From Klebsormidium nitens (lineage: Eukaryota > Plantae > Klebsormidiophyceae): a stretch of 64,000 nucleotides of DNA. The stretch is taken from assembly GCA_000708835.1 (NCBI GenBank), contig DF237199.1, forward strand, positions 58,207-122,206, read 5' to 3'. Made by a program: the position numbers and the translations under genes. The notes beneath the pieces were generated by a model. The model worked only from the letters and a program-made list of their open reading frames with translations, did no database searches and was not told the origin of the DNA. This document shows positions 51,843 through 61,514 of the stretch, piece after piece. Numbering within the stretch: position 1 is the first letter of the stretch; each line of letters starts with the position of its first letter.

Positions 51843-54800
51843 ATGCTGAGCGCCGGCGTAGGGACAGCCTGGGCGGCCGCAGATCTGCGGACCGCAGCAT
51901 TGCAAGGGAGAACAGCACGGCCGCCAGAGATCTCCCACACAGACAGCAGACCTTTTAGGGAGCCCCGCGTGTTGCCTTGGGCCGGGCGAGCGTCATTGCT
52001 TTCAACGCCCCAGTATGCTAGTCGCTCGCTTAATTGTACAAATGGAAGTCTTGGGCCAGTCCGATGCAGCGGGATCTGGCGTGTACAGAATCAGCCAATT
52101 TACATTGCCACACCGTCCACTCCATTAATCAACCACAGGAGCTTCAGAGGTTCATTCCTGGAGCCAAACAACGGAGCTGATGAGGCACCTCAGAGGTCAA
52201 AGGTAGTCAACAGGGCCTCTCACGGAGAGTCGGAGCTGAGCGTTGCAGATCAGCCAGCAATTCTGACACCAGAACCGGTACTGTCAGAGCCAGAGGAAAC
52301 ACCTGGCGAGGAACCAGCGGGTTTCGAAAGGGAGGAGGCCGAAGCCTCTGTCACCATTGAGGGCTCCCTCAAGGAGCAGATTTTGGACCTCACCTTTCAG
52401 AGCGAGTCTGAGAGCGATTCGTCGGAGAGTGAGACAGAAGAGCTGCCCAATTTGGCCACAAGGGACCTTTTTGGGTCAGCTGGGGGCCCAGACGCTCCTC
52501 CCGCAGACCAGCCAGTTTTGTCGGCAACTGATCCGCACCGCCCTTCGTACCACTTCCAACCGGAGTCCGGGTTCATGAATGATCCGAACGGTGAGTGTGT
52601 GCAGTTTTAAGAAAGGGCAGGGTATTGGCTTGGAGTTCCATTTTCACCTGCCACATCCTCTTGTGCCACACCAATGCTCAAATGTCATGCTTCTATACGC
52701 ATTCAAAAAAGTCATTATGAGACGGAGAGTCAAAAGAAACATGTCCGCCAGTGTCCTATCTGGATCGAGGTCCGTCTGTTGGCTGATGAGACTGTTCTCT
52801 CTGGACGGGTTGTGGAGTTTTGAATGCTTAGATTGTACTTACAGTAAATTTGGGTTCAGAATGAAATATAGAGGTCGATGAGAGCTTTCTACCTTAATTG
52901 CTACAACCGGTACCATTGTTCAGATTTTCACCCCCATCTCAGCTGATTGAGAGTTGTCATGCCGCCATCATGTTCCCTGTTAGCCTGCGCTACTTTCTTG
53001 GTTGCGCCACCGTCGGCTTATTTGTTTTCCATCTGACATTTAAGGACTCAGGAGCTGCACAAACAACATACACGCCAGATTTTAGGTTGTCTGCGTGCGT
53101 GTACCTCAGTCCATTTGTCTTCTTCAAATGTGCACAAGGCACGGATCACATTTACGACTTTCCGTACAATGGAACCGCTCCATCACCAAAACGCAAGCGC
53201 ATTTTAAAAGCACCACCTGCACAAGTAAGACATGATTGAAACATCGACGGTCCAAAGAGTCCGCAGCGTACAATGCAATTGTCTGACCGCTTCTGTGCGT
53301 TCTGCAGGCCCCGTGTTCATTGACAACAAGTACCACATCTTCTACCAGTTCAACCCGCTCCGCGCTCTGTGGGACTGGGGCGTCTGCTGGGGCCATGCTG
53401 TGTCCACTGACCTGGTGCACTGGGAGCACCGCCCTGTGGCGCTTACTCCTACACCAAATTCGTATGACCAAGTGAGGACCTAAGTTTCGCTCCTGGTTTC
53501 CATCGATTGTTGCAGTTCATCGTGTGTTGCAGTTTGAGATAGAGCATCTTGACAATAATCAACCTATTTGGAGATAGGCTGGGTGTGTTAGCAGGTTGAT
53601 GTGTATCTGCCATACCAGGACGTCAGCGGCCTTGTGATCGTCAGGTTGTCACGAGACTCACCAGACATTGTTTGTAGACCCAAGCACGACCACCTGGACT
53701 TCTGAATTGGAGGAAGGTTCCCCTCTCCTTTCCAGCTCAGAGGATCCCTACAGTCCCTGCTCGGAATGTTTTCAAAAGTCCTTGCTCAAAAATTCTTCGG
53801 ACGAAACGGATCATTCGACCTGCCTCTTCAGCGGCTCCCAGCCATTTAACGTCCTTCAACATTCATCTACGATTGACAAGAACCATTTTTAACCATCATT
53901 TCCACCCCCGCCCGTTTTGACACTACTCCTTCTTCCTGCCCCTTAGGACGGCATCTTCTCCGGGTGCTGTGTCAACGACCAGGGCGTGGCCACGATCCTG
54001 TACACGGGCGTCCAGATCGCCGGCCCCGAGAGCACCGTCCCCGTCACCTCCGTCTCGCAACTCCTTGGCGCCGCCTTCTCCGAGGTCCAGTGCGTCGCCA
54101 CGTGTAAAGACGACGGCACGTTCATCAAGCACGGCCCCGTCATCAGCGCCCCGCCCGCGGGGCTCGATCTAGTTGGCTTCCGCGACCCGTACGTGTGGAG
54201 GGAAGACGACGAGTGGCTCATGTTGCTCGGGTCGGGGATAAAGGAAGTGGGCGGAACGGCGTTGTTGTATCGGAGCCCGGATCTGCGGCAGTGGGACTTT
54301 GTGCAGCCGCTGATTGTGGGCGACCACAAGGAGAGCGGGACCATGTGGGAGTGCCCGCTGCTCTTCAAGCTCGGCAAGTGGCACGTGCTCTGCGTGTCGC
54401 CCGACAACCCGGCCAACCCCGTCCTCTTCTGGGTGAGCCGCCGAGGGTTGATTAAGGTTTTTCACATTGATTCCGATCTTGGGTTGTGCCCGATTCTGAA
54501 TGAGCCGGTTCAAATCCGTCTTGGCCGAAGTGGATGAATCTGGATCAAGTTGGAAACTGTCTAGACCGAGTCAAACAAACGGATTCGCGTGTTGAATCCG
54601 ACCGAGGCGAAAGAATTGGTTTGACATTGTGTCCGTCTGGACCTTTCGAAAGTTGCCGAACTACTTTCAAACCGGAGAGAGCCAGTTTGTGCTTGGCTTT
54701 GCGTTTGCTCGAAGCATAAATTCTTGGCCTGCATCTCCTCGATTCCACCACTTACTTGTTCCTCAAACAAGCCACCCCTCTGGGCTCTCTCCCCGGCCGC

Positions 54801-56155
54801 AGGTGGGCGGCTTTCTGAACGGGCACTTCATCCCGGTGGGTCCCCCCAAGCGGCTGGACCTGGGCAACGTGGTGTACGCGCCCAACACGTGCGTGGACGG
54901 CAAGCAGCGGCAGCTGCTGTGGGGCTGGGTGCAGGAAGTGCGCGACTCCGAGGCGTGCGTCGCGGCCGGCTACGCGGGCTGCCTCACGCTGCCACGTGTC
55001 GTCGCCATATCGGATGACGGGGAGCTGCTGCAGGTGAGTTAGGCTTACTCGTGGTTGAAAGTAATCACCAACGGGCGGTTGGCTCTTTCCTTCAGTAGGA
55101 CGATGGCTACCGACTTGAATGCACTTTCTGATGCTCATTTCCGTTGCGTCGAAACTGCCGCAGGTCCTGATGGTTTATTGTCGTTGTATTGAATCTTTTG
55201 CCGTATCACGCATGCCGGACTCTTCGAACCGCAGCTACATAGCGCTGCTCCTCTTCGAAGACGTAGACACCTTCTGACTTCCCGAGAGACTTTCCGAGGG
55301 GATCGTGGATAATGGGTTGTCTCCTCGAAGATCAGACCGATAAAGTTGGAATTGCCAGAACTTGGAGAAGAATCTTCGTCGCACGTTTGTCCGATTTGTT
55401 TAGTGGAACTTGCTGGGGCTTGTATACACCATAGAGAAGAGTTTTATCACTCAGAACGATTGTCCATCCAAAGACAGCAAAAAGTCTTCGTGCATCGTTT
55501 GTCGATCGACAAACGAATCGGTGCATCCTTTTTTTCTCAGTACCCTGCTGAGGAGCTGTCCCTATTGCGCGAAGCACAGCTGGTGCGCGAGCGCCGCATC
55601 CCGCTCGGGAAGTACCCCCGCCTGTACGGCGTCCGCACCGGCTGCCTCGAAATCCAGGCGCGCTTCGCCCGGGGGACAGCCGACGCGGTCGGGATCGACA
55701 TCCGGGAGCTGCGCACCAGCATGCTACCAGCAGACGAGGCCCCCCGGGTGGAGGACCCGGTTCCTCTGGCCGCCACTCGCGCGCAGCGGATGCTGCGAAC
55801 CGACCCCCATGAGGGGGTGTTGGTGTCGTATGACTTTAAACGGAAGTGGCTGGAAGTTGCGTGGTGGCAGCCCGGGCCGGACCAGGGCCCCGAGGCGCGG
55901 GGCGAGCTGGTTTCGAAAGGAGGCGCGCTGTCGCTGGACGAAGATGAGCCGTTGGATCTGAGGGTGTTTCTGGATCGGAGCGTCGTGGAGGTGTTTGCGA
56001 ATAATCGGGCGTGCTTGACGACGCGGATGTACCGGGCGGTGATCGGGGTGGCGCTGATTGCGAAGGGGGGGGACGCAGAAGTACAGTCGGTGGATATGTG
56101 GCGGATGGGGAGCATGAGACAGGAAGCGGAACCGGAACTAGCGCGCGCGGCTTAA
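51843..56155 (+). CDS. GH32 beta-fructofuranosidase, copy A
   Basis: Exons 51843-52590, 53308-53471, 53947-54432, 54803-55033 and 55541-56155. Catalytic motifs FMNDPNG, FSG, FRDP and MWECP, plus [12 protein letters not shown] and the C-terminal [11 protein letters not shown]. Confidence 0.95.
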
Positions 56156-61100: not shown

Positions 61101-61514
61101 GTTGTCATCAGTTGATAGCGTGGGGTACTCTGGCGAGGTGACCACAAAGGGGGAGGGGGAGTCGAAAACAGACAGGAGCTCTGGCGCTGGCAGAGGCGCA
61201 TCAAACCCCAAAGCCTCCTTAACAGGAGGCTCCGCAACACTCGCAGACACAGAAAATGGAGAGCGCACGCTCCTCTGCTGGCGTGCTGACCGCCCCCCCT
61301 CACATTTGACTCCAAAAAATGTATACTTCTGCACTAGAAGCGGACAGCCATCGGTTCCTGACACCACCCTTGGATGTCCATCCCCTGACCCTTTCGCCCT
61401 GCAGGAAGACCGTGGATGCTTGAAGGGCGTCTCAACTTCTAAAGAAGCAGCCCTGTGGAGACCTGGAAGCGACCCCAGCACGGGGCCGCCGACCACCCTG
61501 GCAGATGCTTGCAT
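58171..61514 (-). CDS. GH32 beta-fructofuranosidase, copy B (paralog, convergent with copy A)
   Basis: Exons 61514-61067, 60721-60660 ([21 protein letters not shown]) and 59658-58171. The same catalytic motifs are intact. Confidence 0.95.

Follow-up and report, generated by a model that had tools for sequence, protein, structure and literature searches.

Within the window analysed here, a 64,000-nt stretch of contig DF237199.1 of the streptophyte alga Klebsormidium nitens, positions 51843-61514 hold two intact genes for beta-fructofuranosidases of glycoside hydrolase family 32 (GH32). These genes, called A and B below (51843 is the ATG of A on the + strand and 61514 the ATG of B on the - strand), are paralogous nuclear genes of this species. 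Sequence comparisons indicate that they are the streptophyte representatives of an old GH32 clade of intracellular type, which spans the green algae and stands next to bacterial cytoplasmic enzymes. The pair appears to be neither a Klebsormidium oddity nor a recent transfer, the latter being rejected on the basis of a homology search with an algal profile, phylogenetic trees, a topology test and shared insertions. In addition, both proteins begin with long leaders that are real, transcribed, lineage-specific extensions with several transit-peptide-like properties. We therefore discuss a reading in which two enzymes of this old clade carry organellar presequences, which as a whole we regard as plausible, if somewhat short of probable.

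Gene models built from the sequence give A five exons and a 747-aa product, and B three exons and a 665-aa product, with GT-AG introns throughout both genes. A and B lie tail to tail (convergent), separated by a gap of about 2 kb. The model of A matches the database protein P0002 residue for residue and that of B is identical to P0130 (GAQ85723.1), both recorded as Beta-fructofuranosidase [Klebsormidium nitens]; the two genes and their names are already known from GenBank. All four predicted junctions of A were found in assembled contigs of four sequencing runs from four studies, and these runs, whose RNA nature was only guessed, were taken as RNA because spliced contigs are what RNA gives. 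One 3085-nt contig spans positions 51516-56669 and includes the 5' untranslated region (UTR) and the whole leader of A with no upstream splice. An upstream exon providing A with a signal peptide was considered and ruled out, since the RNA contigs, from about 51500 onwards, continue into the open reading frame (ORF) with no splice in between. This contig evidence covers A, and the evidence for expression of B comes from a Trinity transcript of K. subtile and from word shares: the transcript (P0132, 670 aa) codes for the whole B protein including the full leader, which is 91% identical to that of K. nitens, and the same runs that gave the A contigs contained 0.65-0.97 of the sampled words of B. 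The spliced form of B at exon 2 is also seen in protein P0136, derived from a 2.9-kb contig. Both genes are under purifying selection, with a ratio of nonsynonymous to synonymous substitution rates (dN/dS) of 0.06 between the core of B and its orthologue on a Klebsormidium-like metagenome contig (L001), and of 0.2 between A and B.

Regarding the enzymes themselves, A and B are almost certainly GH32 hydrolases. The Pfam profile Glyco_hydro_32N (PF00251, N-terminal five-bladed beta-propeller) matches B exon 3 (E 4e-59) and also A exons 2-4, and Glyco_hydro_32C (PF08244, C-terminal beta-sandwich) matches both B (E 1e-17) and A (E 4e-16). The AlphaFold model of B shows a confident GH32 fold from residue ~131 on, with a predicted local distance difference test score (pLDDT) >90 over 368 residues and an all-beta N-domain. 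A preliminary description of this locus, made from the DNA letters without database searches, had credited both genes with complete catalytic triads, and the Asp/Asp/Glu set is indeed found in A (D247 in NDPNG, D384 in RDP and E439 in WEC) and in B (D154, D292 and E347 in the same motifs). In an alignment of 40 relatives, the RDP Asp and EC Glu columns are invariant and the NDPNG Asp column is nearly so. Both proteins have the intact active site of a retaining beta-fructofuranosidase, with a predicted invertase or exo-fructosidase activity in which an Asp would act as nucleophile, an Asp as transition-state stabiliser and a Glu as acid/base. Sucrose and raffinose are GH32 substrates. The Asp of the 'LDLG' motif is conserved and aligns with Asp239 of Arabidopsis CWINV1, which we take to be sucrose-binding, so that sucrose-type substrates are favoured. 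The catalytic cores of A and B are ~71% identical, whereas their leaders cannot be aligned. The C-terminal beta-sandwich also has a Klebsormidium-specific, low-confidence acidic insertion, located at 58570-58660 in B (residues ~512-540) and in the matching part of A exon 5; in B it includes an 'ECGPEGCG' Cys pair and has a pLDDT <50.

The preliminary description had judged the core more bacterial-like than plant-like, which agrees with the homology searches. After the Klebsormidium proteins, the best non-algal matches are bacterial GH32 proteins of ~480 aa, with 38-44% identity in the first search. Among characterised relatives in the PDB, the highest scores belong to bacterial intracellular beta-fructofuranosidases or sucrose-6-phosphate hydrolase-like enzymes (7vco, 225 bits; Thermotoga maritima BfrA, 1uyp, 178 bits), and lower ones to the land-plant acid invertases and fructan exohydrolases (FEH), which have the same family membership and catalytic triad (Arabidopsis CWINV1, 2ac1, 151 bits; chicory 1-FEH, 1st8, 137 bits). 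Proteins of uncultured Chloroflexota and Acidobacteriota type are 44-48% identical to A and B and resemble them in domain order and in having no signal peptide; they differ in their length of ~480 aa and in the absence of a leader and of the algal insertions described below, and the Klebsormidium genes have spliceosomal introns.

However, the two genes are not a special bacterial-like pair and appear instead to be what Klebsormidium has of a GH32 clade that extends across the green algae. A match from the ulvophyte Ostreobium grouped with Klebsormidium, and a profile of algal sequences retrieved about 50 green-algal homologues, many of them ahead of most bacterial matches, including Bryopsis, Caulerpa, Ulva, Trebouxia, Coccomyxa, Chlorella relatives, Tetradesmus, Chromochloris, Chlamydomonas, Pleodorina, Tetraselmis and a pedinophyte. 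Klebsormidium is the only streptophyte member of the clade among the matches listed. The GH32 phylogeny proposed in the preliminary description, which was to include fungal and plant sequences, was carried out with prokaryotes and green algae, using quick tree searches with support from the Shimodaira-Hasegawa-like approximate likelihood ratio test (SH-aLRT) only; A and B grouped with chlorophytes (99), apart from prokaryotes. The 89-row tree splits prokaryotes by a branch with support of 99 from Klebsormidium (100) together with chlorophytes (100), and the 39-row tree again unites the two algal groups (99), with a branching order equal to that of the species tree (streptophyte versus chlorophytes). 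When Klebsormidium is constrained to join its nearest bacteria, the log-likelihood falls by 22 units, and the approximately unbiased (AU) test rejects this topology (p-AU 0.0145); the test was performed on the 39-row subset under LG+G4, for a group that was named after seeing the tree. An insertion of ~21 residues between YTGV and E.QC occurs in 4/4 Klebsormidium rows and 16/17 chlorophyte rows, with a shorter form in Chromochloris, and an SPD.P.NP-type insertion occurs in 4/4 and 17/17 rows, respectively, while both are absent from 19/19 bacterial rows of the alignment. Arabidopsis CWINV1 has only about five residues at the site of the ~21-residue insertion and appears to be without it. A single green-algal origin of the clade is, on these comparisons, highly probable.

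Clade members such as Chlamydomonas reinhardtii CHLRE_12g488000v5 (P0208) and Ostreobium quekettii CAD7695907.1 (P0127), which are annotated and apparently uncharacterised, group with A and B at a support of 99 and have the same two-domain fold, catalytic residues and both insertions, but they are mostly leaderless, have an extra insertion after WECP and share no intron position with the Klebsormidium genes. This additional insertion, which follows WECP.L.KL, is large and variable (up to ~70 residues) and is found in all chlorophyte members and in neither Klebsormidium nor bacteria. Many chlorophyte members also have C-terminal extensions of 300-900 residues.

The leaders extend over 232 aa in A and 139 aa in B ahead of the conserved RPxYH strand, compared with about 30 residues in bacteria, Ostreobium and Chlamydomonas, and they contain the motifs quoted in the preliminary description (GPVRC-S in A and RSVRSPFSVSA-S in B). 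In both genes the leader shares an exon with the RPxYH strand. Leaderless isoforms arising from an internal ATG were ruled out: exon 1 of A and of B has no in-frame ATG besides the first except the Met within FMNDPNG, and translation of any functional protein therefore has to begin with the leader. Pfam finds no domain in either leader. In line with the earlier view that neither protein has a hydrophobic signal peptide or anchor, no signal-peptide-like hydrophobic stretch was detected in either one (maximum Kyte-Doolittle mean over 19 residues <=0.91). Residues 1-128 of B are predicted to be disordered, with pLDDT <50 and no secondary structure in the AlphaFold model. As assessed by crude composition tests, both leaders are bipartite, with a basic front of ~90-110 residues followed by an acidic or proline-containing stretch. 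The net charge of residues 1-92 is +6 in A and +8 to +12 in the B orthologues, Ser and Thr make up 17-24% of these 92 residues, and Ala, Gly and Pro are abundant. The remainder has a net charge between -5 and -22, with -22 over residues 93-232 in A and about -7 in B, where it is rich in proline. The helical hydrophobic moment of the N-termini is low (0.37-0.44) and the first 30 residues contain five to seven Gly/Pro, features that are unlike those of a mitochondrial presequence.

The leader of B could be compared between K. nitens and the species of contig L001. Residues 1-92 are 40% identical, with a dN of 0.55 that is close to the dS of the core (0.60; the dS of the leader itself is saturated), while residues 93-137 are 69% and the core 94% identical. 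The ATG, the frame, the approximate length, a 'Y.FFG.KCEG' block and the 'SV.ASVAEPPVK' block are all conserved, with the exon-1 ATG and open frame retained at L001 3973-4438. Val at -3 and Ala at -1 form the classical stromal cleavage consensus, which the conserved block of B matches, and the FFGxK of the leader recalls the FGLK motifs of plant transit peptides. The textbook pattern of a stromal transit peptide consists of a variable presequence, a cleavage region that is conserved and a mature N-terminus that is conserved as well, and the conservation of the B leader fits such a peptide, as far as can be judged from the sequences. In our preferred reading, the basic front part of each leader would be a presequence for an organelle, with a chloroplast transit peptide favoured over a mitochondrial one; cleavage in B would take place near the conserved SVxA/SVAEPPVK, and within the organelle the mature enzymes would hydrolyse sucrose and perhaps also raffinose or short fructo-oligosaccharides. 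Among the chlorophytes of the clade, whose members otherwise lack a leader, basic extensions of 35-110 residues turn up sporadically at the N-terminus, namely in P0145/P0146 (Trebouxia), P0159 (Ulva), P0178 (Stichococcus), P0157/P0160, P0141/P0142 and P0150, a distribution that suggests repeated re-addressing of the clade's enzyme.

We consider targeting of A and B to any organelle a serious, though not quite probable, proposition, and hold import into the plastid specifically with somewhat more reserve. Several observations weigh against import, and most of them agree with an alternative that we also rate as possible but doubtful, namely that both enzymes are cytosolic and that the leaders are disordered regions for phosphorylation regulation, protein contact or stability, or have no role. 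Most members of the algal clade are leaderless, and bacterial and most chlorophyte homologues start 15-45 residues ahead of NDPNG, so that the ancestral location was most simply the cytosol and a cytosolic role would be the family default. The leader of B is predicted to be disordered with a front part evolving nearly neutrally, and an extension with no targeting function would be just as likely to be disordered and to evolve fast. Acidic residues, some of which the preliminary description had already remarked on, come early in both leaders (four to five D/E in the first 92 residues), and the counts of two in the first 30 residues and four in the first 60 exceed those of typical land-plant transit peptides. 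The leader of A runs into a strongly acidic, low-complexity tail of 140 residues that is foreign to any standard presequence and whose long Ser/Glu-rich stretch looks like kinase target sites, and this leader has no orthologue for a conservation test. As to the putative substrate, the best-matching NCBIfam models gave scores below their curated cut-offs (scrB_fam, TIGR01322, 211 bits against 356; BfrA, NF041092, 160 bits against 900), with B exon 3 as the sole query; the missing NDPNG exon somewhat lowers the score. However, if the extension were neutral, its ATG, length, frame, order of basic and acidic parts and SV.ASVAEPPVK block would be unlikely to persist across species at a dS of 0.6, and both paralogues have kept a basic front although their leaders are unalignable. 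Of the earlier suggestion that the leaders are transit-peptide-like, the part concerning real, transcribed extensions with several matching properties stands, whereas the leaderless state of most clade members tells against it. Mitochondrial or dual targeting would agree with leaders that are net positive and have no hydrophobic core, and some chlorophyte homologues, those from Trebouxia and lgn157 (P0157), have strongly amphipathic, Arg-rich N-termini with moments of 0.63-0.70, so the family may be re-addressed variously; nevertheless, the low moments and the Gly/Pro content of the Klebsormidium N-termini, as well as a front of about 90-110 residues that is long for such a presequence, make this improbable here.

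Two further alternatives concern the origin of the genes. If the Klebsormidium lineage had recently acquired a GH32 gene from bacteria, with a leader later recruited from upstream DNA, such a transfer would account for an identity to bacteria (43-49% in full alignments) that exceeds that to chlorophyte proteins (36-42%), for two long algal stems joined by a short branch, and for the lack of common intron positions, which fits an intronless ancestor. The last is the main point in its favour and counts against an old algal clade: Ostreobium and Chlamydomonas have four intron positions in common and none in common with Klebsormidium, so shared introns gave no support as proof of common eukaryotic ancestry, and one would have to suppose that introns were lost and regained or that the ancestor was a retro-copy. 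The union of Klebsormidium with chlorophytes in both trees, the rejection of the bacterial-sister constraint, the two insertions found in every algal member and in none of the 19 bacterial rows, and a branching order that matches the species tree nevertheless make such a transfer quite improbable. The Bombyx mori beta-fructofuranosidase (7bwb/7bwc, 143 bits), likewise a bacterial-type GH32 in a eukaryote, is encoded by a gene said to be a lineage-specific bacterial transfer; unlike that gene, the algal genes make up an old clade in agreement with the species tree. An attempt to name a bacterial donor phylum was dropped, as the nearest genome matches are scattered over Acidobacteriota, Planctomycetota, Chloroflexota, Actinomycetota and haloarchaea. 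It is still less credible that A and B are ordinary plant-type acid invertases of the cell wall or vacuole, even though CWINV1 is a clear homologue and some algal relatives have been automatically named after plant CWINV or FEH enzymes. In plant acid invertases, entry into the secretory pathway depends on a signal peptide or propeptide, and the motif is WECPD in cell-wall and WECVD in vacuolar enzymes, whereas A and B have no signal peptide or anchor and have WECPL and WECPI, respectively, where the aligned CWINV1 has WECPD. A and B are probably not nested in the plant acid-invertase clade, because no land-plant protein appears within the best 120 matches of any of the three homology searches, bacterial PDB chains outscore plant ones, and CWINV1 is apparently without the algal insertion after YTG.

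The duplication that produced A and B predates the split of the sampled Klebsormidium species, with A sister to all B sequences in the tree and a dS of 1.1 between A and B compared with 0.6 between B orthologues. The four introns of A (within 52591-55540) and the two of B (within 59659-61066) have no position in common, and both introns of B are conserved in L001, with the same 62-nt exon 2 at L001 4728-4789. Three different phase-1 introns, one each in A, B and Chlamydomonas, lie <=4 codons from the catalytic NDPNG Asp. L001 has no gene A at the syntenic site, and the other Klebsormidium data searched did not yield it either. Synteny is present on both sides of this site, where 2.7 kb of L001 (7685-10398) correspond to 8.3 kb of the window (49823-58171), and in the L001 species the gene may have been lost or may sit elsewhere. 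Like Klebsormidium, Chlamydomonas reinhardtii has two adjacent GH32 genes of the clade (L084 1-846 and 1501-5193), Cre12.g488000 and a neighbour of 1101 aa, which are on opposite strands, head to head.

Table 1. Coordinates of features of the two GH32 genes in the window
Feature	Position	Strand	Content and evidence
Gene A 5' UTR	51497..51842	+	Six upstream ATGs including a 62-codon upstream ORF (uORF); RNA contigs begin at 51497-51516 and run unspliced into the ORF
Gene A exon 1	51843..52590	+	Leader residues 1-232 (51843-52538), then RPSYHFQP strand and FMNDPN; nucleophile D247 at 52581-52583
Gene A exon 2	53308..53471	+	Pfam 32N; GT-AG junction 52589/53307 in contigs of 4 runs
Gene A exon 3	53947..54432	+	RDP D384 at 54184-54186; WEC E439 at 54349-54351
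Gene A exon 4	54803..55033	+	Gene model and RNA contigs
Gene A exon 5	55541..56155	+	GH32 C-terminal beta-sandwich and stop codon; Pfam 32C E 4e-16
Gene A 3' UTR	to about 56717	+	RNA contigs end at 56669-56717
Gene B exon 1	61067..61514	-	Leader residues 1-139 (61514-61098), then RPTYHFQPPA
Gene B putative presequence	61514-61239	-	Residues 1-92, with conserved SVSA/SVAEPPVK block at its end
Gene B exon 2	60660..60721	-	FMNDPNG...IFYQ; nucleophile D154 at 60710-60708; 62 nt
Gene B exon 3	58171..59658	-	Rest of beta-propeller and beta-sandwich; D292 at 59295-59293, E347 at 59130-59128; stop 58171-58173

In the 5' UTR of A, the upstream ATGs are located at 51522, 51579, 51627, 51647, 51722 and 51823, and all of them end before, or are out of frame with, the main ORF. 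Three of the six are in frame 0, and the longest reading, the 62-codon uORF, has its stop ahead of the main ORF. These ATGs could mean that uORFs control how a sugar-cleaving enzyme is translated, or that transcription starts at heterogeneous sites. The only neighbours identified are HAT-repeat / Syf1-like and U3-associated protein 6-like genes upstream of A at 43529-49823 (faint Pfam matches on L001), which are syntenic with the related Klebsormidium contig L001 and are unrelated to sugar metabolism. The preliminary description had envisaged a sucrose/fructan system, an idea that finds no backing in the surroundings of the pair, since no transporter or fructosyltransferase was seen in the genes adjoining A and B, the rest of the window not having been scanned. 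The stromal location, fructan metabolism and stress role put forward there are likewise conjectural.

To our knowledge, GH100 neutral invertases alone are at present credited with cleaving sucrose in plastids and mitochondria, and no other class of enzyme with this organellar function is known from the green lineage. Green-lineage GH32 enzymes, in turn, are treated as cell-wall or vacuolar 'acid' invertases. The plastid and mitochondrial alpha-clade neutral/alkaline invertases of GH100 are nuclear-encoded and have N-terminal transit peptides, and A and B would work likewise if imported. The two types nevertheless differ in that GH100 enzymes belong to an unrelated fold and family, are not beta-fructofuranosidases and are of cyanobacterial origin (PMC10661998). 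Two GH100 enzymes (CINs) have been reported for K. nitens, and the literature found on organellar invertases of this alga concerns GH100 only (PMC10661998). It is possible rather than likely that GH32 beta-fructofuranosidases sent into the chloroplast stroma of Klebsormidium provide a second, independent organellar route for sucrose or raffinose cleavage beside GH100. This route would draw on the ancient intracellular green-algal clade, which was not detected in land plants, and the clade would have been re-addressed repeatedly, as Trebouxia, Ulva and Stichococcus also have basic N-extensions.

In the full-text literature, no paper was found on GH32 of Klebsormidium or of green algae, with Cre12.g488000 appearing only in one expression list. 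The clade and its insertions, its apparent absence from land plants, the sporadic N-terminal extensions and the presequence-like leaders on both Klebsormidium copies look unreported. Cold stress leads to an accumulation of sucrose in Klebsormidium, which also contains raffinose (PMC4207709). Should the leaders have no targeting function, what remains is a pair of invertase-family genes that were annotated before and have disordered tails. The comparisons made here add a separate, widespread and apparently unstudied green-algal GH32 clade without a secretory signal, both Klebsormidium copies of which appear to have gained presequence-like leaders. If import is true, these genes would change the picture of sugar turnover in an alga for which sucrose and raffinose serve as protection against cold and desiccation, and would represent a clean case of the re-addressing of an enzyme by N-terminal extension.

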